The position numbers and the translations under genes were made by a program. Positions 14,205 through 48,427 of a stretch of DNA of 64,000 nt are shown here, piece after piece. Below the pieces are notes generated by a model. It was not told the DNA's origin, did not search any database, and saw only the letters and a list, made by a program, of their open reading frames with translations. This DNA is from Haplodiscus bocki (lineage: Eukaryota): contig OZ296651.1 in the NCBI GenBank assembly GCA_965655095.1, positions 117,738,001-117,802,000 of the forward strand. Reading direction: 5' to 3'. The first letter of the stretch is position 1; each line of letters starts with the position of its first letter.

Positions 14205-14221
14205 CCTCCACTGGGTGGTCA
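14205..14221 (+). repeat. 17-bp unit junction J1 (CCTCCACTGGGTGGTCA)
   Basis: Exact 17-mer shared by all 7 junctions; marks the switch from family B to family A sequence. Confidence 0.95.
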
Positions 14222-14810
14222 GGGATGTAACCTTTTTAGAATCCGAGGCCGGGTAGGGTCCCGTTGCCGAGGTTAAATATTAGTCGATAAATTTTCATCT
14301 AGGTGCACTAGGGGTCTGGGAAGCCGATCTCGGGTCCTACCCGATAGAATTTATTCATAATTTGCATGCGGTCCTCAAATGGCGAAGTGAGAAAGGGGAT
14401 GAGGGAAAAAACTTTTTCCATTCACAACGTGATGAGTTATGACGGAATGATCGTGTTTTTTGTCCCGATTTTGACTTCTCATCGCTTTAGTTCCACATCT
14501 ACCCGATACAATTGGCCCAAATTTTGTGTGTGAGGCACAAATGATTTGAACAATTTGCATGCCAAAAATTTTTGGCCCAGCTTTTTTTGTTCGGGAGATA
14601 GGCGCTGATGAATTTGTAAATTTTTGCAAAAAATGCGTCATTCCGTCATTTTTGATCGCCAAAACCAACTTTTTCTCGTATGCTAGCCTTCGCTAAGGAT
14701 GCCAAAACTGAACCGGCAATTGATTTCGGTTAACCAGAAATTTTCGATCGAAATGCCGAAAAAAAAATGACGGATATGACGGGAAAAAAATGACGGAAAT
14801 GACGGATATT
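14222..14810 (+). repeat. Alpha-type head module with inverted repeats and ATGACGG iterations
   Basis: Homologous to 29230-29815 and 31315-31903, more distantly to beta/gamma heads. CGGGTAGGGTCCC (14250) / GGGTCCTACCCG (14332) inverted pair; 4x ATGACGG at 14767-14805. Confidence 0.85.
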
Positions 14811-14842
14811 TTTGTGAGAAAAAAAAAATTTTCCCGGGAAAG

Positions 14843-14918
14843 GATCGCTTTGCGCGTAAAAAGCGCCTAAAAACGCTGGAATTGATCGTTTTGCGCGTAA
14901 AATGCGGCTAACAATGTT
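14843..14918 (+). repeat. Imperfect 41-bp tandem duplication (GATCG(C/T)TTTGCGCGTAAAA...)
   Basis: Copies start at 14843 and 14884; also present in family A copy 2. Confidence 0.7.
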
Positions 14919-15790
14919 TCGCAGCTTCTACACAAGTGGTCGTTGACACTTTGACAGTATTTTGTCTCATATGACACAGTTTTTTCAGCTAAACTCAAAT
15001 TTAATCTAGTTAGGCGTTACTTATGTAAGTTATATTTTATAATCCTACATTTTTTCTCATCAAGTATAATGGCATACATAAATTATATCTTGGATCAGGG
15101 CTCTTTGTTGGTTGTAGAATGCAATAGATGCTTCCATTACGTGTCATTCATTTTGAAAAATAAAAATAAAAGTTTTGGCAATAAGTTTTGCATTCCATTT
15201 CAATTGTTTGCCAGAAATTTTAAGTTTGTTATATTATTGTTCTGAGCATCTATGAGGTTCTTTCGTTTTCCTTGTTATGTTTTTCTGTAGAAATCAGCAG
15301 TGTTGGAACTTTCCACGTTTGCATTACGAGAGTTGAACCTCTTTCATGCCTTGTAAGTTGGAGTGTGTTATGTAATTGTTAATTTTTTTGGTCAGTTTAT
15401 GGTTGGCGTTCAACAAGCACCACTTTGGCATTCGACAAGGAATATTTTGAGAGTATACTTACTCAGCAGTTTGTTTTGTTTGGTGTACAACGCTAACAGT
15501 CCTCATTGTTTTGAATTTGAATCGTATTTAACTAATCATTTTTTCAAGTACTGCAAGTCTTGCTGAAATCACACAAGCATGGTATTTTCGGCATTAAAAA
15601 CGAAAAGTCACTGAAGAGACAGTTAAAAATTCAACTGGTGAACTTCAAATATTCAATGCAGTGAATCTTTTGAATTCAAATGATCCAACTGTTTTTGAAG
15701 TTCCTTTCGATAGAAGATTTTTCTGTAACGCATGTGGCTGTTTCAAAGCCTTCATTGACTGAGTTTTATAGATGTAGGCGCCGCCACTGA

Positions 15791-16213
15791 GTGTTGATGG
15801 GTGTACAGAGTTTTGACGAATCTCATTTTCAGAAAATGGTTTACTCACTTTGTTTAACTTTGTTGATGATTTGGTCTTCTTTATGGACAGTTTTGGAAAA
15901 AGATGGAATTGTTTATGTGAACAATGTCGGAGAAGTCTTCAGCTCAGACGTCACCGTTGGGGAATTTTGTGTCTCTTTGTGTCTTCAGGATCACTTGCAG
16001 TTTATGAGGATCGGCAATTCTGATGAGGTTTCGATGACTCGCAGAATGTTACTTTTGTTTCTGTTGAGAAGTGGTATAGAAACCAACCCTGGCCCGCCAA
16101 AAAAAAAAGAAATTGTGCAGAGAGCCCAGGAAATGCGTAACATGTGGGCGTTTTTATGGCAGCAAAGACTGCTCCTGTTTCCAATCATCCATGGTAAAAG
16201 CCTCAGTTGGTGA
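15791..16213 (+). CDS. Leader ORF with hydrophobic N-terminus and 2A-like ribosome-skipping motif (LLLFLLRSGIETNPGP); probable 5' part of the RepHel gene
   Basis: GIETNPGP encoded at 16073-16096, followed by an A10 run (16099-16108); removing one A fuses it to the RepHel frame. Likely start ATG 15836, behind an acceptor-like TTTTCAG. Confidence 0.65.
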   Translation: MLMGVQSFDESHFQKMVYSLCLTLLMIWSSLWTVLEKDGIVYVNNVGEVFSSDVTVGEFCVSLCLQDHLQFMRIGNSDEVSMTRRMLLLFLLRSGIETNPGPPKKKEIVQRAQEMRNMWAFLWQQRLLLFPIIHGKSLSW

Positions 16214-19200
16214 AGACTATTTTGATCGGTCGCTGTTTTCTGCGCCATTCAATACCATGAGTCTTTTCTCGAACGTGCCGAATTCAACAGCTTTTTCATG
16301 CACAATCGCTAATTTGACGAGAATTTGCATTGTGTTTGGAATACCGTTTGTGGCAAAACCATTGAACACACACTTGTTGGGTGCCAAATCTTTGAACAGT
16401 TTGCATCCATCACAAACTCATCCTGTTCCAGGTGACGGTAATTGTTTGTTCTCTGCTTTAGCGGTGTCAATTGGGTCACAATATTGGTATCATTCACAAC
16501 TACGCCAGCGTATTTGTTTGGCTTTACCCTCCGTAGATATTGCTCCGCATTTTCTGGAAATTTACACAACCATTGATGGAAATGTTGTGGTAGAGACAGC
16601 TTCAAACGTGAACGAATATTTGAATCGTTCCGGAATGAGATCGAATGGTGTGTATGGCACTTGTGTAGAGATCTATGCTTTCGCCCAAATTGCGGTGGCT
16701 GATGTTTACGTTTACCATTGCATGACAAAATTGTGGATAGTTTATAGCTATGCCGGAGATCGTGCTTCAATGGACGTTCCATCTGTCTTCCTGGTACATA
16801 CTCATACAGGTAACCATTTTGAAACGGTAGCAGTGTTGTCGGCAGAAAATCCAAATTCACAGCAAAGTTTGCCTCATGGTTGCGTCCAGAGTTCATTCCC
16901 AGATACGGCATCACAATGCAATGTGATTTCCGCGTCATTTCATGCGAACACTTCTGATCCAAAAGGTAGTGCGTGTTCTGAATTTAAAGTTTTGCCTCAT
17001 TTGTGCGATGAAGGCCTCACATCACCCTCTGTTGGATTGGGCGGTATGCACAACGACCTTTTGTTGCCCAGCAACAGTTGTTTAAGCCTAGCGACAATTG
17101 AATGTGAAGAAAATGGTTCTAAGTGTGACCCGTTGAGCCCAGGTGTTTGCTTCAATGCCCTGCCTCAGGAGATTCAATCCACGCAATCCGCACACAATGG
17201 CACAGCCACAATGATTATGAAGAAAGATAACGCCTGTCGTAATGAGGATGCCTCGAGTGACAATTGTGTTTTGACGTCCACTTTTTCAGCCGACAAAGCA
17301 CAAAACAGAGAAATGTGCGGTAAATGTTGTCGAATTTCAACTCCTGCTTATCCTTTGCAATGGCAAACTCTTGAAAAAACAGCAATCAAACGAAGGAGAT
17401 TTGGTTTGCGACCTACTGCTACCTGTCTGGTCTGCCAAAGTTGTTTCAATTACAATAATGGCGGAAATTGTTGGCGGTACGCTTGGCCTTCCGTGATTCA
17501 TTCGTTACTGAAGGATCTCAGCATTCGAGATTGTACTATGAAAAAATTTGTTTCTTTTTTACCTCCCGAAATACGCGACAGTTGGGCTATGTGTCAACAT
17601 CTGCATCCTGCTGTTTCTATGGGTGATCCATCTGTTCTAGTTGATATAACAAAACGGAAGGAAGTTTTTCTGGACAAAATAAATTCGGGTAATTTCACTG
17701 ATTTGGAGGAAGCCTTAGATAATGAATGTTATCCAAATTGTAGATGTCCCTTCGGTTGTTTCACATTTGTTGAAGAAACAGGTCGAATCGGTTTCAACCA
17801 CCTTGTAAATGGGATTTTGCCTTCATTCACATCGTTCAGCTCTGATTACTTGTACCATTTGCGAGGTGCAAGAGACGATTGGTTGAAACCAATGAAAGTT
17901 TTGGATGCGTTTGATGTTTCCGGCTTTGTCAGTGTTAATGGGGCATATGGCCTTGTTATCGGAACTTGTGTGCAGCATAACAATGGGTCTCACCTGCAGT
18001 ATCTTCACCCGCCTGCACACCCGTCTCTGGGACGTCTCAGTGTTCCTACCAACGACAGATTAGCATTTGTTGCTCCAAATTTGCGTATTTTGAAGAATGT
18101 CAAAGCGAATTACGCTAGTCACACTTTCCAGTTGCTGAAAGCTGTCGGTAATTATTCAGGCATTAGTAGCATTCGCTTGAGCTCTCAACGCCGTTGGGAT
18201 ATTACTTCGGATCTGTTAGTGAAGGCGGAATCTCAATGTAGTTTTTACCGAAGCGATATTCAATATTTTTTGAATAGCTTAGTGTCTTCTGGCGAAACAA
18301 CTGATGAAATCCGACAAGGCATTCAAAGTAAACCGAACATTGAACAGTCGGCTGCTTCTCTTTCCGCATCAACAAGTGTGTCTATAACGGATACGTATCG
18401 TTTATTCAGTTCTCCTGGATTGACTGATGGACAACGCTTATGCGCAAAATTCAAGTCTGTGACGTTCGCTCAGCCTCCGAATTCGTTTGGTTCCTCTCCT
18501 CCAAAAATTTTCAGCTGCAAGACTCACTTTTTGTCGTTGTTGCAAACTTTATTTTGCATCTCTCCTCAACTGTGTCGATCCATATCTGATTCAGCTGGTG
18601 TTGATAATGCGATTTTTCCTTTGCTGCAATTTTTGGACCCTGTAATTTTTCCAAGGTTCCGTCGCTGCACAAGAAAAACTGTGGATGCGTCTATGAGTGA
18701 TGGATTGTCGAAGTTGTTTACAAGATTTCCGGAAAGTCCATCTCGTTGTCTCAGTTTCGGTGTGTCACAATTTTGTGATGATGTCATCCATGAAAACGTG
18801 GCAAGCCGTCAAGATATTTGGCATTTTTTGGAAGCTCAAGAATTTGAAGGTGTAAATGTCATACTTTTTTCATACGCGGGAGTAAATACTTTGCGTTCTA
18901 AATTCAAAGCTCCTCTGAACTTCCAAACTGCTCAGTCCGTTTTCGAGTTGAAATTTATTGCTACTGAAGGTTTAGCGACTCGTAATAACATTCTTTTGAG
19001 GCATGGTGGTGTCTTTCAAAGTTTTTGGGTGTATAAAAGCAAAAGTATTTTTCCTGAACAGGTGAGGCTGCCTTGTGATAGAGCGGTTGATCATTTTATT
19101 AATGACTATTGGAATATCTGTGTTTACTATCGACAGACCTTTGCCGATATTAGTGAGTTGCGGTCGAAATATTTTGAAACACTGGCAGGTCAAGGAAAAT

Positions 19201-22200
19201 TCTTTTGTAAAAAGCATTCTCTGTTACTCACCCGTGATTTTCCTTCAAGTGGTTTCAAATGCTCATGTGGTAGAAGTTCTTTTTTACGTTGTCCAGTGTC
19301 TGGTTGTTTGGCAAGTGTTTGCAGGATGCATTCTGAAGATGAAAGTCAGGAAAAGCACTTTGTTTTTGATGGTAAAAAAAGGATCTTTGGTGAGTCCACA
19401 AAAAACTCAGCGTGCGGCTCAAGTCAGTTAGATGATTGTAGCTATAGCCGTGTTTCTGTCGATTCAGAGAATCGGTCCACATCGCCTACCAACACTGTCG
19501 CGTCCTCGGAATTTGTTACCAACCCTGGCCTTTTAGAGGAAGATTCTGAGGGATCGCATGTTTCGCTGCCTGTTACAACTGCTGCTGGAGATTCAACTGT
19601 TGTTTTGGAACGTGATTTCCGAATAGACAGCACTGATTTTCAGCTCCCACTACATGTTTTATTGAATGGTCAATGCGGTTTACTGAAAAGGAGTAAAGGG
19701 TCTCCGTTGTATGTTGCAGCTAGACATAAGAGATTTCTGGAGAATATCACTGCAACGTCGCCCCCTAATTCTGTCCCTTTGCTTCAGCCGGAAGCCATGT
19801 TGTTTCCGTCCATCTTTTGGCACCAAAATACAGACGGCAGTTATTCGGGTGCAATACCGTCTCCTTTGTATAATGATCACAAACAAAACGAATTGCTCGG
19901 CTTCGCTAGCTTAGAACAACATTTACAAACGCGCTTGAAAGATTCGTCTCTGTTGACGTCAACGGATCCTCGTTACGTCCAATACGTATTTGACACAATA
20001 TTTAACCTACAGCTGCGTGTCAATGACACGAGAATAGTATTGAACAGAGGTTGGAGTGAAGCCGCTCGGCAACGAAAAAATGTACATGCCATGCGAGAAG
20101 GGGCAATTTTTTTTGATCAATGCGATTCTCGGAAGAATGTCAATGAATTGGGAGCAGCTTTGAAAGAACGACCAGCTACATATTTTTTCACTTACACTTG
20201 TGGGCAGTCAACGCATCCTGGCTTGAGGAAGATTTTTAGTGCGTTGGACGCAAAGTTTCCGAAAGACGTCTGTAAAGAGGAGGTCCGAAAATCAGCGATT
20301 CAATCTGAAATGGTCACCATGTTGAGAGCGTGGGAACGAGCTTCTCGTCTTGTCATGAAGTACATTGAAACGTCACCCGAGCAGCCATTGGGAAAGGTTA
20401 ATAAGATTTGGTATCGGTATGAGTTTCAAGATGAAGCTTGTGGGTTCCCTCATGTACATGCTTTGATTTGGACGGCAGAAGATTGCTTTAGTGAAGCAGT
20501 AAGGTCTAGAATTTGTTGCTCGGCAACAACGTTTCTGGGGAATTTATTGACTGAAGTTGGTTCGCACAATTATAGTTTGGATGAGTTGAACGAGTTACGA
20601 GATCTGTTCAACCGTTACCAATCACACAGCTGTTTTAAAGCTAAATTTCGTTGTCAGAAAAAAACTGACAAATTGAAAAGAAAAACGTGCCGCGTGCCCA
20701 AATACCCTCCTTCTGCTAATTTTACCTACAAATGTATTCACAAAGAACTGTCTGAGGAAACGATAGCAGTTTTGAAGAACATCGGATTAGCTGAGTCGAG
20801 TGACTTTGATTGTTCTGTCACCATTGATCAGCGCCTTTGTGGTGGCAAGCATCATTATCCAACAGAAAGTAACACGCACACTTCTCCAACAAACGCCAAA
20901 ATTTTTGCCCTCGTCCGATCTAGCACCAATCTACAAATTTGCGACATTTACATGAGTAGCCGTTATCTGTCAAAATATGTTGCAGGCGTGGAGGAACGCG
21001 CCGAAGTTTCTATTTCTACGTCAAGTGCAACAGATTTGTATGACTTCCATGTTGATCAACAAGTGAACAACAAAATCGCTGGGGTATACTTGACCAATAT
21101 GAGCAAGGAGGAAAAGCCAAAGAAAAAGTGTTTGAACTCTCGCATTTTGAGTTTAACGGAATCCGTGTGGTGGTCATTGCGATTTCCTTACGTGGTGACC
21201 AATATACAATTCATTCATGTTGTCACTGCCCCGCGAGAGAAACGGGCTGGAATAGTCATTGAACCGAAATGCAGGCTTTCTAGTAGCAATCAGGGTCCTC
21301 TTTTTGGGCGCCAGAGTTCCATTAGACACAGCAAGGACTTTCCTCCTCACCGTTGCTTCACGGTTAATCAGAAGCTGCTGATAATTGATGCAGAAAAAAG
21401 TTCTCTTTCTCCAGACAAGATAACAGTTTTTGGTGTACGACCCCCTGAACTAACTTTTGTGCTCAAAGTGGAAAACTATTTTACTTGGTTCTGCCGCTTC
21501 CGAAAGCCCTCAAAGTTGACACCAGAAAGTTTACTAAAGAGAAATGTAACCAAATCATATTGGGTGGATGGCCTCGGCTATTGCATATACCTTAATGCTT
21601 TGTACAAAGAAGCTTTTTTCAACTACTGTCGCAACTTTTCTAGTGGGGTCCGTCGTTTCTCCAGGCAATGTCATGAAGCCATTGCATGTACAACGAGCAG
21701 TTCAAGTCACAAGTTCATTTATGACAAAAAGGTTTGTCAAACTCAAGTAGTTTTATCGAACGTTGTTCCGAGGAACACAACCAATTTTTTGACCCACATT
21801 CTGTTGTCTCTTGGAGAATACGTAACCGAACTTGACATTTTTTCTCAATCGAATATGAAATCTGCGTTCTTTGAGGCTTCTTTAGCGAGGTCTCATTTAG
21901 GATGCGAAGATTCCGAAGTTATTGATGTTGTTCGGCGCTTTGTGCTTGAACAATTACGCTATTATCCAGGATCATCTACTTTACTAGATCGATTTGTTAC
22001 GAGTGCCTATTTGTGCATCCAGCAAGCAGCACAAAATAATTCGGTCGTTTTTCCGAGCTCAACACCGCGCGTCTTAGAACAGAGTATTGCGCAGCAGAGT
22101 GACAGCAATATTTCACACGAATTAAATGCGCAGAAAGAGAGTCTTCTGTGTGCCATTGCCAATGGGGGTTATGTTGGTTTACCAACGTATGCAGAATTGA

Positions 22201-24134: not shown

Positions 24135-25475
24135 TGTTTATTTGATTGTTCATATGTAATTGTCTACAACGATTTAGACTTTTGTAAAACTGCCATCGAG
24201 AAAACCGATTGTATTTCAAAAGTATTCCTGAACATTGGTTTGTCCGAAACCAACTTTTCAGCAAATAATTTTTGTAGCCAATCATGTTGATTGATTTGAT
24301 TCTTTGCCATTGTTTGCTGTTGGTTTTGAGCCAACCTTTGAAAAAGAGGATGTGTTGTAATAGTTGGAAGATTAATTTTGTAACGGGATGTCGTTTTCAT
24401 TTTTATCACCTTTTCGTTGGACTCACTGAGTAACTTTGTTTAGATTCGTGATCGAACTTTTATGCTATGATACTTTATGGAATAACGTACACAATTATAT
24501 CACACGGTAATTGAAAGAATCATACAATCCTTTTCCGCCATAATTTGTTTTGACATGTGTCTGTAATTACACTGAAGGAGCTGTTTTGATGTTTTTGGGA
24601 GATTGTTTCCAATATTTCAGACGCTATAGGGGTTTAACTTTTTGTTCGGTAATCAGTGCAGAAATTTATTGAAAAAATTGTCAACTGCAAGAGAATGTGA
24701 CGGGGTTTCTACAATGTGACATTGCTGTTTATGTTTTGTGATTGTATCACTGACTGTGAGCTGTTTTAGATGTTAATTCTGACTCATATAATGATTTATT
24801 TTTTTTATAGCTGACGGAGGCAATTTAGCTTTCATGTTTTGTTTTGCTGGTTGCTCAGCAACCGCCGACGCAAGTTCTCAATTAGAATGTTGTTTGTTAG
24901 ATGAACGTATATGAGTTGGTTGTCCAGCAACCCATGTTCTACAAACTGGCCTGGAAACATAAAGAGATAGCAGCGGAGTTCATTTGTAGCGCGGCACCTT
25001 TCAAATCCATTCCATATTCCTTGTTACGGAAGCTGTGAACACTTTTTCTTTCAAGTCATTAAACGCTCTATCATTTGTTTTATGAGAAGCTTTTTTATTA
25101 TCGTTACTTTTGTGAATTGAAGTGTTTCACCACTATGTACTTCTTTGCAGCGATTAAAGAGGGGCTCTTATTTCGTGCATATCGAGTTGTTTGAGTGAGA
25201 TTTTCATTCTTCGGGTATGTGGCTATTGTATTTTTTATAAAATTTCCTTTCCTCAAAGAACATTTCTGATTTTTGACCGTATTGACGACTCTGTAGCTGT
25301 GTGACCGTTGTGAATTTTTGTTTGACTTCGTTTTTGTTCTAATAAGCAAATGACATGAATGAAAGGAGATTCTGGAGTTTGAGTAGGTTTTTCTAATTGC
25401 AAAGTAAACAATATAAAGTATGTTTCGTTCGTTTGTTTGTTTTCATAATGCATTGTCTTTCGGTTTCCGGTTGTT

Positions 25476-26129: not shown

Positions 26130-26291
26130 TGATTACACGGTTGATGCATTTAACATCCGAACCAAGTGAGTAGATACAAATTTCGTGCATAACATATTCA
26201 CTTTACTCAGTGTCAATAGTTTAAAGTTTTTGGTAACCAAATCCGGAGTTGGAAGAGTTAACTGGAGAGTTTTTTATGCTTCAATAACAGC

Positions 26292-26331
26292 ACTTGCTTG
26301 TTTTCACGATTCATCGTGAAAACAAGCAAGT
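26292..26331. repeat. Perfect 19-bp inverted repeat with 2-nt spacer
   Basis: ACTTGCTTGTTTTCACGAT-TC-ATCGTGAAAACAAGCAAGT. Confidence 0.9.
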
Positions 26332-39300: not shown

Positions 39301-41227
39301 CACCTTAGCACGTCCTTTTACTTGGAGCCAGAAGATACATAAAGCGCGCAACCAGACTGACGAATCATTGCATGATCAACAGAATATTTTGGATTACGTT
39401 TGTTCTTTGTACGATAATTATTGTTCTTGTACGACTGCCTTTATTAAACATCAGTTCATAGTTGGTCCACCAGGTACAGGAAAGAGCCATGTGTTGATCC
39501 ATTGTGTGATCGCGGCTCTAGCTAGGGGATTGAGATGCGTCATAACTAGTGTCGCTGCGGAGAGAGCTTCACTTTTCGGCGGAAGACACATAAACGCTTT
39601 AATCCCTTTCCCTGTCGTTCAAAATGGAACGGTGACTCATCTAGTTTCGCATGCATTGAACACTCTTGCCCGAGATCCTGTAAAATTTACTTTTTTGGAG
39701 AGGTTGGATGTTTTATTTGTCGAGGAAGTCTCAATGATTTCAGCTGAACTTTGGTCCGCAATGGACAATGTGTTGCAAGCCGTGTCTGAAAACAATCTTC
39801 CCTTTGGAGGAAAGATTGTTATTTGCACAGGTGATTTTCGTCAACTTCCGCCTCCTACGGGAACGTTCCTTTTGCTGAGCAACTCGGTGTTAGCTAATTT
39901 CGAGGTTCGGTATTTGAAGCACTATGTGAGGATGCAGAACCAGCAAGGAAAGAGACTTCTGGATTTGCTGTCTGAATATCCTGTGACAGAAGCATGTATT
40001 AAGGAGTGTTGTGAGATCATTGACAAGTTCTGTATTTTTGTAAGCACGTGGACGGAAGTCCCTCTGGATATTTTGAGAGTGTTCAGTACGCGAGTTGCGG
40101 AAAAAGAGGCCGTGGAAGAGAGAATATCGTTTGTGACAACACATCAAAACATACAGAGTGTGTCTTTCCATTGCAAGGATGAAATGTCAAATACAGGAAC
40201 CCAGAATTGGGTTACCGCAACAGCACCCGTCAGCAAGTTCCTCAACCGAAGTTGCCTTGAGCCAGAGTCTTTGTTTATACATGTTGGGTGTGTATTGCGC
40301 TTAACTTGCAATTTGCCATCGCTGAAACTGTTCCAGGGACAATTGTGTTTAGTTGAATCGTTCGATGAAAATGATCCTCATATTGTTGTGAGAGTTGCAC
40401 CAGCCGGAGTAAGGTCTGTGTCATCTAACAACCCGGACGTTAATTCCTGGAGACTTGTAGTTGTTCGTAAAAGAATTGGCGTTCTCCATAAGTATAGCAA
40501 TTCTATCGTTTGCAGACGTGTTCAGTTTCCTTTGAAAATGTATGTGGCGTCAACGGTTCACAAAATAATGGGTGACACTGTTCCAAGCTTGGCAACACAG
40601 ATTGTTGGTGGTAAAAAATTTTCCTACTGGCTGAAAGAGCAGCTTTATGTAGTTGTTAGTCGGGTCACTGATCTTTCCCATATAACGTTTGTCGGTGACA
40701 AGCAGCGTACACTTGATGCAATTAATCTTCTTTGCCGCAAAGATAGCCATTTGGTACCTTTGATAGATAACTTTTTGTCGTCTCGTGGCAGTTGTAATTC
40801 CGGTGTTTCAGCGATCCAGACATTTTATCCCTTTCCCTTACGTGTTTTTGATGTACCCCTTTCGGCAATTGGTTACTGTTATTTGTTGGTGAGCGTTAAA
40901 CGCAGGGAACTTTTTTACATTGGAAGCTGTAAGACGTTGCGGCGACGATTGCAGGAGCATAATTCGGGAAATGGGAGCGCATTTACAAAGCCTGTTGAAA
41001 GAAGACCCTGGGCTTTAGTTGCTTACGTGACGGGGTTTTCCAACGCTGTTTCCCGAAGCCGTTACTCTTTCGAACAGGATTGGCAAAGAGCAATGGTTAA
41101 TCACAAATATTCGAATGTGATGCTAACGCTTGCAGATTACTTGTCAGAATGCCATGTTCTTATGGATTTGTATAAAGTTACAGGTATCGAAACAGCCCTG
41201 GAATGTGATTGCATGCAGAATTTTTAG
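33206..41227 (+). CDS. RepHel polyprotein (OTU/Rep/PIF1/GIY-YIG), 2673 aa, copy 2
   Basis: Same motifs as 16113-24134; about 9 amino-acid differences counted by eye, including CGKC->CGKF. Confidence 0.95.
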   Translation: MCREPRKCVTCGRFYGSKDCSCFQSSMVKASVGEDYFDRSLFSAPFNTMSLFSNVPNSTAFSCTIANLTRICIVFGIPFVAKPLNTHLLGAKSLNSLHPSQTHPVPGDGNCLFSALAVSIGSQYWYHSQLRQRICLALPSVDIAPHFLEIYTTIDGNVVVETASNVNEYLNRSGMRSNGVYGTCVEIYAFAQIAVADVYVYHCMTKLWIVYSYAGDRASMDVPSVFLVHTHTGNHFETVAVLSAENPNSQQSLPHGCVQSSFPDTASQCNVISASFHANTSDPKGSACSEFKVLPHLCDEGLTSPSVGLGGMHNDLLLPSNSCLSLATIECEENGSKCDPLSPGVCFNALPQEIQSTQSAHNGTATMIMKKDNACRNEDASSDNCVLTSTFSADKAQNREMCGKFCRISTPAYPLQWQTLEKTAIKRRRFGLRPTATCLVCQSCFDYNNGGNCWRYAWPSVIHSLLKDLSIRDCTMKKFVSFLPPEIRDSWAMCQHLHPAVSMGDPSVLVDITKRKEVFLDKINSGNFTDLEEALDNECYPNCRCPFGCFTFVEETGRIGFNHLVNGILPSFTSFSSDYLYHLRGARDDWLKPMKVLDAFDVSGFVSVNGAYGLVIGTCVQHNNGSHLQYLHPPAHPSLGRLSVPTNDRLAFVAPNLRILKNVKANYASHTFQLLKAVGNYSGISSIRLSSQRRWDITSDLLVKAESQCSFYRSDIQYFLNSLVSSGETTDEIRQGIQSKPNIEQSAASLSASTSVSITDTYRLFSSPGLTDGQRLCAKFKSVTFAQPPNSFGSSPPKILSCKTHFLSLLQTLFCISPQLCRSISDSAGVDNAIFPLLQFLDPVIFPRFRRCTRKTVDASMSDGLSKLFTRFPESPSRCLSFGVSQFCDDVIHENVASRQDIWHFLEAQEFEGVNVILFSYAGVNTLRSKFKAPLNFQTAQSVFELKFIATEGLATRNNILLRHGGVFQSFWVYKSKSIFPEQVRLPCDRAVDHFINDYWNICVYYRQTFADISELRSKYFETLAGQGKFFCKKHSLLLTRDFPSSGFKCSCGRSSFLRCPVSGCLASVCRMHSEDESQEKHFVFDGKKRIFGESTKNSACGSSQLDDCSYSRVSVDSENRSTSPTNTVASSEFVTNPGLLEEDSEGSHVSLPVTTAAGDSTVVLERDFRIDSTDFQLPLHVLLNGQCGLLKRSKGSPLYVAARHKRFLENITATSPPNSVPLLQPEAMLFPSIFWHQNTDGSYSGAIPSPLYNDHKQNELLGFASLEQHLQTRLKDSSLLTSTDPRYVQYVFDTIFNLQLRVNDTRIVLNRGWSEAARQRKNVHAMREGAIFFDQCDSRKNVNELGAALKERPATYFFTYTCGQSTHPGLRKIFSALDAKFPKDVCKEEDRKSAIQSEMVTMLRAWERASRLVMKYIETSPEQPLGKVNKIWYRYEFQDEACGFPHVHALIWTAEDCFSEAVRSRICCSATTFLGNLLTEVGSHNYSLDELNELRDLFNRYQSHSCFKAKFRCQKKTDKLKRKTCRVPKYPPSANFTYKCIHKELSEETIAVLKNIGLAESSDFDCSVTIDQRLCGGKHHYPTESNTHTSPTNAKIFALVRSSTNLQICDIYMSSRYLSKYVAGVEERAEVSISTSSATDLYDFHVDQQVNNKIAGVYLTNMSKEEKPKKKCLNSRILSLTESVWWSLRFPYVVTNIQFIHVVTAPREKRAGIVIEPKCRLSSSNQGPLFGRQSSIRHSKDFPPHRCFTVNQKLLIIDAEKSSLSPDKITVFGVRPPELTFVLKVENYFTWFCRFRKPSKLTPESLLKRNVTKSYWVDGLGYCIYLNALYKEAFFNYCRNFSSGVRRFSRQCHEAIACTTSSSSHKFIYDKKVCQTQVVLSNVVPRNTTNFLTHILLSLGEYVTELDIFSQSNMKSAFFEASLARSHLGCEDSEVIDVVRRFVLEQLRYYPGSSTLLDRFVTSAYLCIQQAAQNNSVVFPCSTPRVLEQSIVQQSDSNISHELNAQKESLLCAIANGGYVGLPTYAELMNATLARPFTWSQKIHKARNQTDESLHDQQNILDYVCSLYDNYCSCTTAFIKHQFIVGPPGTGKSHVLIHCVIAALARGLRCVITSVAAERASLFGGRHINALIPFPVVQNGTVTHLVSHALNTLARDPVKFTFLERLDVLFVEEVSMISAELWSAMDNVLQAVSENNLPFGGKIVICTGDFRQLPPPTGTFLLLSNSVLANFEVRYLKHYVRMQNQQGKRLLDLLSEYPVTEACIKECCEIIDKFCIFVSTWTEVPLDILRVFSTRVAEKEAVEERISFVTTHQNIQSVSFHCKDEMSNTGTQNWVTATAPVSKFLNRSCLEPESLFIHVGCVLRLTCNLPSLKLFQGQLCLVESFDENDPHIVVRVAPAGVRSVSSNNPDVNSWRLVVVRKRIGVLHKYSNSIVCRRVQFPLKMYVASTVHKIMGDTVPSLATQIVGGKKFSYWLKEQLYVVVSRVTDLSHITFVGDKQRTLDAINLLCRKDSHLVPLIDNFLSSRGSCNSGVSAIQTFYPFPLRVFDVPLSAIGYCYLLVSVKRRELFYIGSCKTLRRRLQEHNSGNGSAFTKPVERRPWALVAYVTGFSNAVSRSRYSFEQDWQRAMVNHKYSNVMLTLADYLSECHVLMDLYKVTGIETALECDCMQNF

Positions 41228-42568
41228 TGTTTATTTGATTGTTCATATGTAATTGTCTACAACGATTTAGACTTTTGTAAAACTGCCATCGAGAAAACCG
41301 ATTGTATTTCAAAAGTATTCCTGAACATTGGTTTGTCCGAAACCAACTTTTCAGCAAATAATTTTTGTAGCCAATCATGTTGATTGATTTGATTCTTTGC
41401 CATTGTTTGCTGTTGGTTTTGAGCCAACCTTTGAAAAAGAGGATGTGTTGTAATAGTTGGAAGATTAATTTTGTAACGGGATGTCGTTTTCATTTTTATC
41501 ACCTTTTCGTTGGACTCACTGAGTAACTTTGTTTAGATTCGTGATCGAACTTTTATGCTATGATACTTTATGGAATAACGTACACAATTATATCACACGG
41601 TAATTGAAAGAATCATACAATCCTTTTCCGCCATAATTTGTTTTGACATGTGTCTGTAATTACACTGAAGGAGCTGTTTTGATGTTTTTGGGAGATTGTT
41701 TCCAATATTTCAGACGCTATAGGGGTTTAACTTTTTGTTCGGTAATCAGTGCAGAAATTTATTGAAAAAATTGTCAACTGCAAGAGAATGTGACGGGGTT
41801 TCTACAATGTGACATTGCTGTTTATGTTTTGTGATTGTATCACTGACTGTGAGCTGTTTTAGATGTTAATTCTGACTCATATAATGATTTATTTTTTTTA
41901 TAGCTGACGGAGGCAATTTAGCTTTCATGTTTCGTTTTGCTGGTTGCTCAGCAACCGCCGACGCAAGTTCTCAATTAGAATGTTGTTTGTTAGATGAACG
42001 TATATGAGTTGGTTGTCCAGCAACCCATGTTCTACAAACTGGCCTGGAAACATAAAGAGATAGCAGCGGAGTTCATTTGTAGCGCGGCACCTTTCAAATC
42101 CATTCCATATTCCTTGTTACGGAAGATGTGAACACTTTTTCTTTCAAGTCATTAAACGCTCTATCATTTGTTTTATGAGAAGCTTTTTTATTATCGTTAC
42201 TTTTGTGAATTGAAGTGTTTCACCACTATGTACTTCTTTGCAGCGATTAAAGAGGGGCTCTTATTTCGTGCATATCGAGTTGTTTGAGTGAGATTTTCAT
42301 TCTTCGGGTATGTGGCTATTGTATTTTTTATAAAATTTCCTTTCCTCAAAGAACATTTCTGATTTTTGACCGTATTGACGACTCTGTAGCTGTGTGACCG
42401 TTGTGAATTTTTGTTTGACTTCGTTTTTGTTCTAATAAGCAAATGACATGAATGAAAGGAGATTCTGGAGTTTGAGTAGGTTTTTCTAATTGCAAAGTAA
42501 ACAATATAAAGTATGTTTCGTTCGTTTGTTTGTTTTCATAATACATTGTCTTTCGGTTTCCGGTTGTT

Positions 42569-43222
42569 ATGTCTGAATATTTTGTTTTGGCGGCCTCTTC
42601 CCTTTATTGGGCAGCTCAGGAGAAACCTTACCTCTTTGATCCTTTCAAGTCACAATTTTGTGCAATTTCTGGTGCTTCGCTAAATAACTACCAACCAGAA
42701 AAAAACATTTGTTATCTTCTTCAATCGAATTCCTGCAACACTAATGGAAGAAAGGTTATCATTTGGCATGATGCTGTCAATAACTCTTTGTCAAGCAAGA
42801 AGAATCCGGCAATGAGTCCTGAGGCTTTTTTCAGTAAACTGGCGTACTTGAGAAAATTCAATGTCGTGGCTTTTTCCTACTTACCACGATCAGGAGCGCA
42901 TAATTTAAACGAGCTCTTGGAAAATTGTCCAACAGGAATTATTTTTTTGAAAATGAAATCGATTCTATCAAAACGGTACAAACTTTTACTTGATGAAAGT
43001 AACGATCTGCACCTGAATAGCTTGTTAGAGAATCATATGCTATCCAGAACACTGTTGAACAATGGTTTGCAGGATTTGACTTTGCGTCGGTGCCGCAATA
43101 GACGCAATAATCTCCGAAACAAAGTTAGTGTTTTAGTTTTTGGTTTCTGTTTTATTGACAATTTCGAAGATAAGCAGCAACATATTTTTGCCACAATTTT
43201 TGAAAGAAAACCGGAACGTTAG
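42569..43222 (+). CDS. Divergent SGNH-hydrolase-like protein, copy 2
   Basis: Same translation as 25476-26129. Confidence 0.6.
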   Translation: MSEYFVLAASSLYWAAQEKPYLFDPFKSQFCAISGASLNNYQPEKNICYLLQSNSCNTNGRKVIIWHDAVNNSLSSKKNPAMSPEAFFSKLAYLRKFNVVAFSYLPRSGAHNLNELLENCPTGIIFLKMKSILSKRYKLLLDESNDLHLNSLLENHMLSRTLLNNGLQDLTLRRCRNRRNNLRNKVSVLVFGFCFIDNFEDKQQHIFATIFERKPER

Positions 43223-43384
43223 TGATTACACGGTTGATGCATTTAACATCCGAACCAAGTGAGTAGATACAAATTTCGTGCATAACATATTCACTTTACT
43301 CAGTGTCAATAGTTTAAAGTTTTTGGTAACCAAATCCGGAGTTGGAAGAGTTAACTGGAGAGTTTTTTATGCTTCAATAACAGC

Positions 43385-43424
43385 ACTTGCTTGTTTTCAC
43401 GATTCATCGTGAAAACAAGCAAGT
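43385..43424. repeat. Perfect 19-bp inverted repeat, copy 2
   Basis: Identical to 26292-26331. Confidence 0.9.
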
Positions 43425-44164
43425 CCTTTGCGAACTATTTCAAGATTATCTGTTTCTTGCAGGTCAAAAGAAACAGATGTGAGTTTCACGAATCGGCATA
43501 GGCATCAATTACCGCGAGCTCCATGAAGATAACTTGATGATTAGGAAGTCCGTCGGTGTTTTAACACCGCGTGAATATTTGTAATGCGGTCATTTCTGTC
43601 ATGATTTGGTGTTATTGTTTAATTGCACTATTTGTGCTGCCATATGGTTTTTAAATGTAAAAAATGAATTGGCAATATTGCATTCATTTAGTTGAACTAT
43701 GATTTTACATTTGATGATGTTATTTGAAGCTGAACGCTTTTTTGGCATTTTGTTTATATCCTTTTGGCATGCAGGTTTTTTTACTGGAATCTGTTGTAAA
43801 TTGTTTTGTTTTTGGAAATAGAAATAGTTCAGAGGAAATTCAGTTTAATGTACTATCTGTGTTTCAATTTATATGTTTTCGGTATGCGACCAATTTTTGA
43901 CTTGGAGTGGAAAACTGTTTTGAGGACACACCCGATAAATGACTGCAGATTCAGTTGATTCCAGACAAAGTGTACCATAGACGGGACTGAAGAGTTGCTA
44001 GGCTTTAATAAAAAAACGGATTTTCTAAAGTTTTCTTTCATCAAAAATTTTTCTTTGTTCATTGGGCGTTTTCCGTTTGAGAGAAATCAGACTGCAAATC
44101 TTGACTTGTGTTTTTTATCGTGTACTTCCTCGTTTGAAACACATCCTTTTGCATTTTTTAAGAA

Positions 44165-45157
44165 ATGAATAGACAAGTAACTGTTGCTGAAGTTACAGGC
44201 GAAGGTTTCCTGCGCAACAGCCAGAACACTGTAATAAGGGGGATAGTTTTGGTTCTGAAAAAAAGTGATCGGCCACTTCAGTTGTTTAGACCTCAAGCTA
44301 CAAAATTGAAACGACCACTTCCTGAAGGGACATATGACAGAATGGCTATTATTGGTCAATGGAATAGTAAAGATTGTTTTGTCGTCATCTCAGTTTCCGC
44401 GCAGAAGTCTGCTAAACTGTTTTCGGATCGTCATCTGACTGTTGGTTCTGTTGTAGAGGTTACAGAGCCTATATATTCGAACACGTGTTTAGGGAATGAC
44501 AAAAATAATCCGATTATTGAAACTCATCAGGCGATCGTTGTTATCAATAACGTAAGCAATGAGGATTTTCCGCCAATTCCAATTATTTCCCTACCGAGCA
44601 CGCCCGCAATGTTCCATTACACTCTCAACAGTAGAAATTTGTTGTTTTTGCATGGAAACATTATATCACCTACGTGTTCTGGAAGTATGTGCGACCGTCG
44701 TATTCTCAGAAATGAAACGGTGTGCGCTTGCTTACACAAGAATTCAGTTTCGTCGTGGACTGTCGCCGCACGCATCATTTCTAGGGACGTGGAAGAAGAA
44801 GCGGACGATCCCCTGAGCGGAGACATGACCCAAAGTCATCAGTTGGCATCGTTCTTTTGCAGCAATGACGTTCTTCGATTGCCAGCTAGCTCGGTTGAAT
44901 TGAATCTGTTGCGTGAATCAATGACTAGGGTGACAGCATATGTCAACGATAATGGTGGTTGGAGAATATCTGGCTACAGCAAATCCAGTGTCAGTGATGA
45001 GTCAATTACTCAAGCTGTTCATCATGTGCGAATTTGTCGTCTTATGCCAGCTTCGGTAATCCCGAACAACTTGAAGTACACTATTGGTAATGCTCGGCAA
45101 CCGCCCAATCGGCCACCTCCACTACAGCATGCCAACCCGAATGTTCAGCACGATTGA
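44165..45157 (+). CDS. Conserved 330-aa accessory protein, copy 2
   Basis: One amino-acid difference (V->A) from 27073-28065. Confidence 0.8.
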   Translation: MNRQVTVAEVTGEGFLRNSQNTVIRGIVLVLKKSDRPLQLFRPQATKLKRPLPEGTYDRMAIIGQWNSKDCFVVISVSAQKSAKLFSDRHLTVGSVVEVTEPIYSNTCLGNDKNNPIIETHQAIVVINNVSNEDFPPIPIISLPSTPAMFHYTLNSRNLLFLHGNIISPTCSGSMCDRRILRNETVCACLHKNSVSSWTVAARIISRDVEEEADDPLSGDMTQSHQLASFFCSNDVLRLPASSVELNLLRESMTRVTAYVNDNGGWRISGYSKSSVSDESITQAVHHVRICRLMPASVIPNNLKYTIGNARQPPNRPPPLQHANPNVQHD

Positions 45158-46304
45158 TTTGTTATGGATGTTTCAAAATCCCCTACGGATATGTGCTTTT
45201 TGAAGTCGAATGAGAATGAACATATAGAAGGATGTTCCTTTTTGAAAGTTTCACATCTATTGTTATTCTGTAGTGCCGTCGATGAATTCAACGCAGTTGC
45301 CTTAGCAACTCAACTTTACATGGTCTCTTTTACATTTAAACCTTCTTTCCACAAACTTTACAATGAAACAAACAACTGTTTTTCTCTCACCTAAATAAAT
45401 CTTGTTTCGTTATGGCAGTACCCTGCATTATTCTCTGTAAAGTAGTTCGATTTACTTCAATAATCCACGTTGAAGGTTTTATGAAATTTTCACTACGCTT
45501 TTCAATGTTAGTAAAGCACTATGGAAGTAATTTTCTTAAGTCAGTGGCCTCTCAATAATGATGCTATCATTAGTATTAGAAGATATATTTGCTCCAATTT
45601 GTCAAGATATTGATAAATTTAACGTACTCAAATTAGATAGGAACTTTTGGTTCGCGATTTGCCTCGTGTTCAAATAGTTTACTCATAAAGTTGGAGGAAC
45701 AAATGAAAATACTTTGAAAGTGTTCAAAGTTCTAAAAGAGATTCACTGTGAATAGCAACGATTTATAGTTTGCATGAGCCGTGAAGTCATTTCGATGTCC
45801 CAAGTCAGTGGTACGCTCACAGAAGTCTATGTTGTCTTTGTTCAAAATGTCGCAGTGATTAAACGGAGATGAAATTCTCGTTTAAAATAAGACAGTAAAG
45901 AAGGTTGAGCGAATTTTGCAGTGTGTGAGCCTCGTTTTGCTATGTAGACATATCGATCTTTTAGGATCATTTATAAATGGGAAAACGTGTAGGAGCTTTG
46001 AAATTTTTCATAAACAGCTGTTTTGAGTTTTATGTTTCTTCTCAAAATTTAATTGTTATTTTTGGACCTGGTTTTTTCAATAGGAGTTGGAAAAAATTCT
46101 TTTACTCAGGGGTTTTTCTTTGATAAAGTCGGATCTATTTTTCCGTTTTGGCTATTGTTGTTCATTTCTTGAACGGTTTTAGCTTCTGTTCTGTTGAGAT
46201 TGAGAGTTAATTTTTTTTACTTTTATGACAAAACTCCATTTCAGTTGGTGTCCACAGATACCTATCCAACATTCACTGGGCCTCTCTAGCGAACGGTACC
46301 TTTG

Positions 46305-46321
46305 CCTCCACTGGGTGGTCA
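46305..46321 (+). repeat. 17-bp unit junction J5
   Basis: Exact CCTCCACTGGGTGGTCA; identity between the two A copies and their right flanks stops a few bases after it. Confidence 0.95.
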
Positions 46322-47352
46322 GGGGATTGCGCCCCACATAGGTCCTCGCGAGGCGGGGGAGGGGCCCCTTTGCCTCGCGTTAAAATATAGGAAATAACAA
46401 ATACGCACTTACGGTATAGGGAATGTGCGATCTCAGCTCCCACCCATACGATTTGGATCAAACTTTGCATGCGGACATAACTTTCAATTCTAAGAACAAT
46501 GGTGCAAGTTAGATCATTTTAGCAAAAATGGTTGGGGAGTTATGACGGGATGATTCTGTTTTTTGGCCTCATTTTGCAGTTTTTTACCGACAGCCCTGCA
46601 AGTAACCAGATGCATTTGGCCGAAACTTTTCGTGTGAAGCAGAATAACTAAGGGCTACACGCATGCAAGAAATTTTCTACCAACTCGTCATAGGTGTTGA
46701 GATATGACGGATCAAATTTGGAAAAAAATGCCGAAAATCGACCATTTCGTCATAGCTCCCACATTGAAGTGCATAGTTTGCCCTCTGGAGTGGCTCCAGT
46801 ATGAAATCAACTCCATAACTTGAAAGACAATTTTCCGAAGATGAAAAATTTTCGGCCACTTTGCCGAAAGAAATGACGGTTATGACGAAATTTTCGAAAA
46901 AAATATTAAAAATTTCCAAAAACTCAGTTTTGATTGTAGAATTCATATCTGGCAAATGTTTTGTCCAACTTTCCCCCAAATTTTTCTTACTGCATAGTTT
47001 TTTTGAATTTTAACCTTTTTTGTGGGTTGAAGTATTGAAATTTTCTGGAAAAACAATCATAATTTGGCCCAAAATTTAAAAAAAAAAATTTCGAAATTCA
47101 AATTGTTAATTGCCCCGCCCCGTTGTTTCGTAGATTAGCGAAGCGACACGGAGAAACAACGGGGCCAAACTGTTCGGAAGCTTCGTCTTCAATGTCCTGT
47201 CGATTTCAATGAAGATTTCACAGGCTCAATTTCAATGCATTAAACAGGCATTTGCAAAACTCATTACTGTGTTCGAAGAAAAGACTATCAGTAATGTATC
47301 ATATTTCAGAGGTGCTTCTCCAGTGACCGCCACCTGGTGATTTTCACCGGTG
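46305..47352 (+). mobile_element. Short non-autonomous unit, gamma type (1,048 bp)
   Basis: Diverged, but keeps head motifs (CGAGGCGGGGGAGGGGCCCC, CGATCTC, GAGTTATGACG, ATGACGGTTATGACG at 46873), the hairpin at 47117-47165 and a beta-like tail hairpin. Confidence 0.8.
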
Positions 47353-47369
47353 CCTCCACTGGGTGGTCA
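47353..47369 (+). repeat. 17-bp unit junction J6
   Basis: Exact CCTCCACTGGGTGGTCA. Confidence 0.95.
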
Positions 47370-48410
47370 CGCTTTTTAGCCACACAAAACATTTGCGAGG
47401 CGGGGTAGGGGCCCCTGTGCCGAGCTTCATAAATCAAGTTTACACCTAACCGGACCCCCCCGAAAAGGAGACGATCTCGAAACCTAACCATACGATTTTG
47501 ATGAAACTTTGCATGTGGATAGAGTCTGCCGATGTATGAACATTTTTGGCACTTACATCATTTTTTTTCTTTTGGTTGGGGAGATATGACGCAATGATCC
47601 TGTTTTTTGGCAGGTTTCGATGTTTTTCCCGCAATATCTCCACACTTTACCCATAGCATTGGACCCTAATTTTTTGTGTGAAGCACATTTGCTGTTAACT
47701 ACCTACATGCCAAAATTTTTGGCCAGGGCCTTTTGCCCTAGGAGATAAGACCTTTCAAATTTGTCAAAAAGAGGCCAAAATCGAGCATTTTGTCATTTCT
47801 CCCAGGTTGATGTTAAAAAAGTGATGTGAGCTTTCGTCACAACGTGACGGGACCTGTGTCAAATGAAAGATAATTTTCCGACGAAAAAACAGTTTTGGTC
47901 AAATTGCCGAAAATAATGACGGTTATGACGAAATTTCCGAAAAAAAAAATAAAAAATTCCCAAAAAATTAATTTTTGACTGCAGAATTAATCCCGATGAT
48001 CATTTGCGCGATTTCTTCGCCCAAAATCTTCCTCCCATCCGAAAGGGGTCAAGATCAACTAGAAAGTTCACGTAGAACAGTTTTCCGAAAGTTTTCTCGA
48101 ACATCACACAAACGGTTGAAAAACCTACAAAGAAAGGACAAAAATCGAGAATCAAATTTCACATCACCTTCGCCCCGTTTTTCCGTAGATTAGCGCAGCG
48201 TTTCTGAGGAATAACGGGGCAAAAAGGATTTCCACTTTTCTTTACTTTATCTACTTTTTTAAGTTTTTATGACAGAAGTCTCTAAAAATGTAGTTTTTGA
48301 CTCAAACTGGGGAAAGTACCTAACATGGAACGTTTCATAGGAACAGTGAAAGTGCATACATTGGCACAAAAAAATAACCAGTGGCCGCCAACTGGTGAAT
48401 TTCACCGTTG
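47353..48410 (+). mobile_element. Short non-autonomous unit, beta type, copy 2 (1,058 bp)
   Basis: Homologous end to end with 30240-31297, but with many more substitutions than between the two A copies. Confidence 0.85.
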
Positions 48411-48427
48411 CCTCCACTGGGTGGTCA
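48411..48427 (+). repeat. 17-bp unit junction J7
   Basis: Exact CCTCCACTGGGTGGTCA. Confidence 0.95.

Follow-up and report, generated by a model that had tools for sequence, protein, structure and literature searches.

Mixed head-to-tail arrays of Helitron-like elements joined at their own ends in Haplodiscus bocki

The array in the window

The 64,000 bp of Haplodiscus bocki contig OZ296651.1 analysed here (the window; GenBank assembly GCA_965655095.1, positions 117,738,001 to 117,802,000) contain a head-to-tail array of Helitron-like transposable elements, which abut one another at a recurring 17-mer, CCTCCACTGGGTGGTCA. Seven exact copies of the 17-mer are present, all on the + strand (Table 1), with spacings of 15008, 1027, 1058, 15007, 1048 and 1058 bp. 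There is no extra site in the window at up to 2 mismatches, and the chance expectation is 0 (0 matches in 100 shuffles). Self-BLAST and a listing of the flanking sequences place a switch in homology at the 17-mers, giving the unit order B-A-alpha-beta-A-gamma-beta-B. When 70 nt on each side of every 17-mer are compared, unrelated neighbours are similar only in the 17-mer itself and in about 6 nt 5' of it. No spacer, target-site duplication or terminal inverted repeat is found between the units in the window, and Rfam has no match in it. These results agree with an initial annotation, made from the sequence alone, which had reported the seven copies in one orientation, the exact switch of family, the unit order and the absence of host DNA, target-site duplications and terminal inverted repeats between units.

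The A and B units encode RepHel proteins, identifying the units as Helitron-like rolling-circle transposons and their short non-autonomous derivatives; the rolling-circle assignment had been made initially and the domain content confirms it. The two A copies are 99.8% identical in self-BLAST (14205-29212 against 31298-46304), the match breaking off 26 bp short of the upstream 17-mer and 3 bp past the downstream one. The two beta units are 94.6-94.7% identical over their full length and B1 (1-14204) and B2 (48428-64000) are 88-96% identical by self-BLAST, while alpha and gamma give no alignment in the self-comparison. An A followed by two short units produces a pseudo-period of 17.1 kb in the window. 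Because A, beta and the alpha and gamma pair differ so much in identity, simple block duplication and a single concatemer are excluded. Whole alpha, beta and gamma units, including both head and tail, recur in other neighbourhoods on other contigs, which supports the view, already taken in the initial annotation, that the units run from junction to junction.

Table 1. Coordinates of the elements, junctions, open reading frames (ORFs) and motifs in the window. LTS, left terminal sequence (5' end); RTS, right terminal sequence (3' end).
Feature	Position	Strand	Remarks
B1, 3' part of autonomous B	1-14214	+	5' part beyond window start; RTS ...CACCGTTGCCTCCACTGG
B1 RepHel gene, broken into four ORFs	2756-10753	-	Pfam matches: OTU-like, 9014-10753; Rep, 6070-8943; PIF1 helicase, 3779-5665; GIY-YIG, 2756-3571
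Junction B1-A1	14205-14221	+	RTS end 14205-14214, LTS start 14215-14221
A1, complete autonomous element, 15,008 bp	14215-29222	+	5'-GTGGTCAGGG...CCTCCACTGG-3'
LTS hairpin core CGGG-TAGGGT-CCCG	14250-14263	+	36 nt inside A1
LTS hairpin cores after the remaining junctions	29258, 30288, 31343, 46354, 47401, 48459		same offset
ATGACG hexamer sites	14439, 14767-14804; 29446, 29774-29811; 30473, 30804-30818; 46542, 46873-46887; 48644, 48965-48979		
A1 RepHel ORF, intact	16191-24134	+	2647 aa from ATG; 2673 aa from first TTG at 16113
A1 accessory ORF, 217 aa	25476-26129	+	identical protein on 12 contigs
A1 accessory ORF, 330 aa	27073-28065	+	four-cysteine motif; 50% identical to 343-aa ORF of B
Junction A1-alpha	29213-29229	+	17-mer
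alpha, non-autonomous, 1027 bp	29223-30249	+	A-type head over first ~628 bp (93%), own tail
Junction alpha-beta1	30240-30256	+	17-mer
beta1, non-autonomous, 1058 bp	30250-31307	+	B-type head over ~550 bp (95%), B-type RTS
Junction beta1-A2	31298-31314	+	17-mer
A2, second complete A copy	31308-46314	+	99.8% identical to A1
A2 RepHel ORF, intact	33206-41227		within A2
A2 accessory ORFs	42569-43222 and 44165-45157		within A2
Junction A2-gamma	46305-46321	+	17-mer
gamma, non-autonomous, 1048 bp	46315-47362	+	whole-unit copies 88-95% in L025, L028
Junction gamma-beta2	47353-47369	+	17-mer
beta2, non-autonomous, 1058 bp	47363-48420	+	97.6% identical to L025 unit
Junction beta2-B2	48411-48427	+	17-mer
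B2, 5' part of second B copy	48421-64000	+	3' end beyond window
B2 conserved accessory ORF, 343 aa	49737-50768	-	
B2 degraded RepHel ORFs	53936-61901	-	

A composite junction that combines different ends

Related loci were collected by exact-protein look-ups: 37 of them, 13.5-28 kb long, are spread over 19 contigs of ENA assembly ERZ26859043, while a second ENA assembly contributed two more and an NCBI genome one (loci are given L numbers here). The A1-alpha-beta1 part of the window is present at 100% identity in locus L003, so the window and ERZ26859043 are from the same organism and the order of these three units has been assembled independently. A second contig across A2-gamma-beta2-B2 was not found by exact look-up of the product of the 343-aa ORF of B2.

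It had been thought that the units share an invariant 17-bp site. The 17-mer is, however, composite: its first 10 nt close one element (...CCTCCACTGG-3') and its other 7 nt open the next (5'-GTGGTCA...). These are the RTS end and the LTS start of the A/B group, and other families use other ends. The unit boundary lies inside it, between G10 and G11 (+/-1 nt). This placement comes from the ends of the other families and from three joints. The A start GTGGTCAGGG is fused to an internal ...TTCTCG of another A in L001 and to an internal ...GTCCTG of a B in L006, the first ten bases of the 17-mer being missing in both; in L011 an A stops 24 bp early, at an internal CATTCACTGG, and GTGGTCA follows directly. 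Epsilon units have the RTS ...CCTCCAGCGCTAG and the LTS GTGGTCCGG. The delta RTS is ...CCGTGCACGTCTAG and its LTS is GTGCCATAAC, with GTGGT(C/T)GGCCC as the LTS of delta', and theta units end in ...CCACACT.TC...CTAG and start with GTGGCCG(T/C)CTC.

After removal of overlaps, a total of 224 distinct junctions were counted on 18 contigs and in the window, and these are co-oriented within each contig. The four bases 5' of the LTS are CTAG at 193 junctions, CTGG at 28, and CTCG, CTTG and CCTG at one each, two of the last three being inside other elements. The LTS itself starts with GTGG at 202 junctions and with GTGC at 22. The base before it is always G, so that G^G (the caret marking the joint) is present at all junctions and array edges, and the general form of the elements is 5'-GTG(G/C)...CT(A/G)G-3'. 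Of approximately 139 instances of an RTS motif, all but one (L028:11882) are followed by an LTS. The ends are freely combined: 58 of the 214 classified junctions (27%) join non-cognate end types, for example an A-RTS to an epsilon-LTS or a delta-RTS to an epsilon-LTS.

Junctions of this kind were also found beyond ERZ26859043. In the second ENA assembly (L018), a RepHel 57% identical to that of A is near CCTCCACTGG^GTGGTCA and CCTCCGCTGG^GTGGTCC. A JGI scan that used the 17-mer plus the hairpin motif as the query found one metagenome contig, Ga0126343_10350460 (L041), in which a B tail (90%) is joined to a gamma-type head. The junction type and its varied neighbours are therefore not peculiar to one assembly.

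A coincidence was seen at two of the unusual joints. The interrupted A (L001:8026) and the interrupted B (L006:8420) are both cut exactly 424 bp before the end of the unit and are then followed by a full A start; the matching positions in the window are 28788 for A and 13780 for B. The two 424-bp tails are not homologous (z of about 2.5) and a motif search at the breaks gave nothing consistent. The B1 tail, including its last 424 bp, is contiguous in the independent JGI contig at 90% identity.

Recent spread of element A

Copies of A on at least 10 other contigs match A1 at 99.6-100% identity (differences of 0-0.4%). Their 3' neighbours are of about 10 different kinds and their 5' neighbours of 7. 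On the 3' side are alpha (window and L003), gamma (window), A (L009), an A variant (L014, L030), delta' (L002/L015), epsilon (L007, L012), zeta (L008), an alpha-like unit (L011) and a gamma-type head followed by unique sequence (L016). On the 5' side are B and beta (window), C (L005), A (L009), the interior of an A (L001), the interior of a B (L006) and unique non-coding DNA ending ...TTCCTGG (L030). The short units around the A copies are 85-98% alike. A is therefore a young element that has been placed many times at exact unit borders within older arrays, and the initial description of a heterogeneous array of mixed age, rather than one concatemer, holds with A at 99.6-100% among units at 85-98%. 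The same annotation had named dispersed single copies as evidence that would tell against an array system; no sampled A is flanked on both sides by non-element DNA, and in L030 the unique DNA is on the 5' side only. Being intact and recently active, A is a candidate experimental system.

On contig ctg88836 (L013:10980, 15780; L014:178), A copies are joined internally without the junction motif. The internal joints run from unit position 12252 to 10153 and from 14953 to 1449, and resemble ordinary deletions or duplications within a tandem of A.

Array edges and local amplification

The array on ctg88153, sampled from 170,144 to 324,883, spans at least 155 kb and contains 80 junctions on one strand. 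At its left edge (L038:4389, which is L024:2397) unique DNA ending ...GCGCTAG is joined to a delta'-LTS. The flank contains a copia-type reverse transcriptase fragment and an exon matching proteasome subunit beta type-2, the scores of which against PDB (141 bits for mammalian chains, 118 for the next group and 93 for yeast) indicate an animal-like host. A second left edge, in L030, joins unique DNA ending ...TTCCTGG to an A-LTS, and at the right edge at L028:11882 an epsilon RTS is followed by unique sequence. Every LTS is preceded by ...(C)TNG, which matches the 3' ends of the elements themselves. The unique DNA to the right of the L028 edge (L028:11883-12400) has ORFs without a Pfam match and may be another degraded mobile element.

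Some units have also been multiplied in place. There are three identical delta units in L002 and an A-A tandem in L009. On ctg88153 (L035, L036), four delta-type units of 1250, 1259, 1255 and 1257 bp recur with a period of 5.02 kb, which shows satellite-like block amplification on top of unit-by-unit mixing. Another contig of ERZ26859043, ctg82348_34.98x_c (L025, L026), is 119,150 bp long and was flagged as circular by the assembler (suffix _c). The 40 kb sampled from it contain only mixed epsilon, theta, delta, beta and gamma units, with 30 junctions. Either an artefact of repeat assembly or a large extrachromosomal circle of array DNA could account for it.

Autonomous elements and their proteins

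The autonomous set consists of A, B and at least 10 further families, each with one giant HUH Rep-PIF1-GIY-YIG protein. A database search gave 29 related giant proteins, most of them in ENA assemblies. Four motifs are kept in 13 families: PH[ILV]HA (HUH), RY[LIV]xKY (the two tyrosines), GPPGTGK[ST] (Walker A) and the GIY-YIG motif. The transposases of the families found in the arrays are only 37-58% identical to one another, the RepHel of B being 37-40% identical in amino acids to that of A.

In the A1 RepHel, the Rep domain covers about residues 1180-1700; H1447/H1449 belong to the HUH motif and Y1618/Y1622 are the tyrosines. The protein also has the Walker A motif of a PIF1 helicase and, at its C-terminus, a GIY-YIG domain. 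In agreement, Pfam identifies Helitron_like_N (31.8 bits against a cut-off of 28.9), PIF1 and the C-terminal GIY-YIG in the A protein. A weak OTU-like match is present in B, C and two homologs and is absent from A. Against PDB, RepHel matches PIF1 helicases and the helicase part of Helraiser, and for the Rep domain the match is confined to the helicase part. Pfam found no AP endonuclease domain in the transposase, there is no recombinase domain in the scanned window ORFs of at least 150 aa, and no captured host genes are recognisable. The RepHel gene of B is opposite to the LTS-to-RTS direction and to the strand of the A gene, although the ends of B and A are co-directed.

The autonomous elements carry, in addition, a conserved Cys-rich accessory protein of 330-343 aa, which is also found at L018:6562-7554, L032:6844-7857 and L033:4024-5022 and has invariant C171, C176, C187 and C189. 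Its identity between A and B, 50%, exceeds that of the transposase. Sequence searches of Pfam and PDB gave no match for it, and its AlphaFold2 model (pLDDT 38.8, from a 6-sequence alignment) is not usable. For the 217-aa ORF of A1, the Pfam scan gave no functional assignment.

Short non-autonomous units

The short units are 1.0-1.45 kb and retain only a head and a tail. Whole-unit copies of alpha are found at 91% in L011 and at 100% in L003. Five unit types had been counted in the window. Alpha, however, has the head of A, and beta that of B, so the five types are autonomous elements paired with short non-autonomous derivatives. In L016 a gamma-type head (93%) is followed by about 5 kb of unique sequence and then by a RepHel gene on the opposite strand, and this may be a long element with a gamma-type head.

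Terminal hairpins and motifs

About 35-45 nt into each LTS there is a GGG..GGG.CCC hairpin, which does not vary across 14 families; compensatory changes affect 3 of its 7 predicted pairs. The core GGGGGAAGGGGCCCCC is found upstream of a RepHel gene in the NCBI genome (L017:296; GCA_025491035.1, JAOQID010001757.1), which is 29% GC and has a RepHel 30% identical to that of A. The motif is therefore old; the ends of the L017 element could not be defined.

A small stem at nt 8-20 of the 5' end is found in 9 of 13 families; the proposal of a hairpin there was dropped, with folding z-scores near 0 for most LTS types. In the tails of B, beta and gamma, a putative 5-bp stem-loop, GGTGA-ATT-TCACC, is located 10 nt before the terminal decamer and has a counterpart, GGTA..TACC, in the zeta tail (both read by eye). 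No consistent inverted repeat is found between the element ends. Across the joint, CCAC...GTGG can pair in A-type joints, as opposed to GCAC...GTGC in delta-type joints, which is one compensatory change. A junction hairpin that would put the nick at the border of loop and stem is suggestive only.

In the heads of A, alpha, beta, gamma, B and zeta, the hexamer ATGACG keeps constant offsets of about 225 and about 545-585 from the LTS. Each head has 2-7 forward copies, where about 0.5 would be expected on both strands. TRF lists the hexamer as a 23-bp repeat in the A and alpha heads. Epsilon and theta units essentially lack it, and delta has a single copy at another offset. Its role could be that of a protein-binding iteron, or of a promoter element, restricted to the families with the common 17-mer.

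How the arrays may be built

The best explanation of these arrays, given a probability of roughly 0.6, is a Rep that attaches incoming elements to the 3' ends of resident ones or, rarely, to a CTNG in other DNA. Judging from the joints, Rep would nick between the two G residues of the RTS-LTS boundary, to within 1 nt. The excised element would probably be circular, its own RTS-LTS joint recreating the 17-mer. In a strand transfer catalysed by Rep, the incoming LTS would be joined to the 3'-OH exposed at the resident RTS end, and the incoming RTS would be joined to whatever came next. Any ...CTNG-3' may be usable at low frequency, with real RTS ends strongly preferred. Since CTNG would be needed on the 5' side of the nick, every RTS end would be a target, and since each insertion would make a new target, co-oriented arrays without host DNA could grow to more than 100 kb. 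Later tandem amplification of blocks would add the higher-order repeats. Targeting of resident RTS ends would account for the exact joints, the free mixing of end types, the co-orientation, the lack of host DNA, the growth of the arrays and the rare edges at CTGG or CTAG.

Helraiser is a precedent. There, Rep nicks the LTS and stays covalently bound, the 3'-OH of the RTS resolves the Rep link to give a circle with a precise RTS-LTS joint, and such circles are transposition donors (PMC4778049). The initial annotation had proposed that circles integrate into an existing 17-mer at a shared nick site. Circular donors and a common nick are close to the explanation favoured here, but the site is the boundary between two ends and the full junction is not needed, as the LTS can abut CTCG, CCTG or CTTG, and CTGG or CTAG in unique DNA.

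Several observations weigh against targeting of resident ends. The loci were fetched via proteins encoded by the elements, nearly all from one assembly, and therefore form a biased sample in which solitary copies of other families are possible; in the second assembly (L019) a RepHel is found near a host-like exon with no recognisable junction. Only three array edges were found and never both edges of one array. Neighbours of the same type are enriched (156 of 214 junctions) and the 5-kb higher-order repeats exist, so local amplification contributes much. No empty site was found for any A insertion. At the three internal-site joints of the A-A and B-A kinds, the displaced 424-bp tail was not found downstream, so these are not simple insertions and premature termination fits them better. 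In addition, the 5'-end hairpin is no more stable than shuffled sequence (first 32 nt, 13 LTS types, z mostly about 0). A beta-gamma joint in L025 was considered as an empty site for A2 and rejected; it is only 88-94% identical to the window units and is not orthologous.

It is possible, if rather unlikely, that the units were only shuffled, deleted and duplicated by site-specific recombination between existing junctions, with no free intermediate. Conjugative relaxases recombine two oriT copies, and a Rep that nicked two RTS-LTS junctions, in the same or in different arrays, and swapped their strands in a relaxase-like way would use the same chemistry as insertion at resident ends. The combination of ends across families and the shuffled look of the unit order are in keeping with this, and co-orientation within each contig is expected of sites in direct repeat. 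Recombination alone, however, does not explain a near-identical A on at least 10 contigs with different neighbours on both sides, nor an LTS joined to CTGG or CTAG in unique DNA. It is less probable again that the arrays were carried to their locations rather than built in place, with Rep skipping RTSs so that multi-unit blocks moved together. Helitrons are known to bypass the RTS and to use other 3' ends (PMC4778049, PMC4224331), there are alternative stops here 24 bp and 424 bp before the normal ends, and the four-unit repeats in L035 would fit. Blocks that moved together would share flanks at the level of identity of A, but the neighbours of A differ on almost every contig, and A1 and A2 share none beyond the common RTS and LTS ends.

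Unequal crossover or segmental duplication of one ancestral block, acting in a satellite-like way without targeted insertion, might be read from the 17.1-kb pseudo-period, the identical delta runs and the 5.02-kb higher-order repeats. Within the pseudo-period, though, A1 and A2 are 99.8% identical, beta1 and beta2 94.7%, and alpha and gamma unalignable. The switches occur at one exact phosphodiester bond at 224 junctions with flanks sharing only G^GTG, whereas crossover in homologous segments would put them inside the conserved heads. Crossover does not explain the unit order in the window, which the initial annotation had wished to see checked, and it is very improbable as the origin of the arrays. 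Least credible of all is an origin of the array as one rolling-circle concatemer with later divergence, or as an artefact in which a repeat was collapsed or expanded during assembly. Rolling-circle replication can yield tandem copies, as in the A-A tandem of L009, and the circular flag on an all-array contig is typical of repeat-assembly problems. A concatemer is at odds with the low identity between the transposases of the families (37-58%) and with unit ages that differ about 50-fold. Against an artefact, A1-alpha-beta1 is reproduced at 100% on an ENA contig and the junction type is found on 18 contigs, in the second ENA assembly and on the JGI contig.

Comparison with known systems

The elements belong to the Helitron-like superfamily, without the 5'-TC, A^T or T^T characters. 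Like the canonical Helitrons (HLE1, e.g. Helraiser), they have a RepHel with HUH, two tyrosines and a PIF1-like helicase, a 3' end that fits CTRR (CTGG or CTAG at 221 of the 224 junctions), and junctions without duplication or spacer. No target duplication is seen at any of the 224 unit-unit junctions, and both edges of one insertion in host DNA were never observed. They differ from HLE1 in that the 5' end is GTGG or GTGC and not TC, the base before the LTS is a G within CTNG and not a host A (so that insertion is not of the A^T kind), and there is an extra GIY-YIG nuclease, with a weak OTU-like match in some families.

It had been stated initially that no description of such joined elements was known, which is too strong. 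Consecutive insertion was given as the cause of a precise head-to-tail pair of different Helitrons in maize, which has a CTAG^TC joint (PMC2267711). The same paper cites perfect head-to-tail junctions between Helitrons in bat, and distantly related Helitrons directly adjoin in both bat and maize (PMC4067079). Adjacency of this kind is rare there, whereas here it is the rule (224 junctions, in arrays of at least 155 kb).

Helitron2/Helentron elements (HLE2) share with the present ones the sequence features near both ends, a RepHel that can be in either orientation relative to the ends (PMC3627910, PMC4067079) and abundant short non-autonomous partners with the ends of the autonomous element. 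A GIY-YIG domain has been reported in one HLE2 family of Sphagnum (PMC11417382). Unlike in HLE2, all junctions and edges here are G^G and none is T^T (or T^C), asymmetric terminal inverted repeats are not clearly present, and the transposase has no AP endonuclease.

The IS91 family also uses a tetranucleotide target beside its origin end that resembles its own termination site, as CTNG does here. The target is CTTG/GTTC next to oriIS and the cleavage at terIS is at CTCG (PMC13181058). The apparent lack of target duplication and the alternative or one-ended termination are shared as well. IS91 elements are bacterial and without a helicase or GIY-YIG fusion; the likeness is functional only and does not imply membership.

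Site-directed, co-oriented build-up of autonomous and many non-autonomous elements in one compartment is also seen in the telomere-capping Helitrons of Paramecium and the subtelomeric Helitrons of cnidarians. Those of Paramecium are telomere-directed and have very long transposase ORFs, with an orientation that varies between families (PMC13085455), and Hydractinia has megabase-scale subtelomeric tandem arrays derived from Helitrons (PMC11934779). They differ from the present arrays in that the Paramecium target is telomeric repeats, short telomeric stretches following each RTS (PMC13085455), and in that the Hydractinia arrays come from one subfamily with internal repeats (PMC11934779). In what was read of these two papers, no direct RTS-LTS joints between the ends of different families are described.

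The arrays had also been compared with integrons, which likewise have one-directional arrays of different units bounded by a recombination site and apparently built by insertion of circular units. Nothing points to a cassette-like function: no tyrosine recombinase was found in the window ORFs scanned, attI/attC and promoter-driven host cassettes are absent, and captured host genes were not recognised. The units are the transposons themselves.

Implications

In the literature searched there are no arrays of at least 100 kb in which many families are joined by direct RTS-LTS joints with mixed end types, nor a CTNG target rule for a eukaryotic element. The chances are evenly balanced that the elements constitute an undescribed GIY-YIG lineage of Helitron-like transposons, with GTGG...CTRG ends and a Rep that would prefer any resident 3' end and use CTNG more weakly, the families stacking into co-oriented arrays of at least 100 kb. 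If this is true, the transposons would be creating their own safe haven, and satellite-like DNA would arise from them by a direct enzymatic route; a tetranucleotide target rule of the IS91 type would also be operating in a eukaryotic element.

The target of a Helitron is usually given as a loose AT or TT dinucleotide, and Helitrons in tandem are regarded as by-products of rolling-circle replication. If confirmed, insertion at resident ends would provide a testable HUH target rule for a eukaryotic transposon, with a G^G nick after CTNG and RTS ends preferred. It would also explain how many competing families share one genomic compartment without disrupting genes, and would offer a mechanism for the long, mixed, one-directional repeat arrays found at subtelomeres and in other repeat-rich regions of long-read animal genomes.

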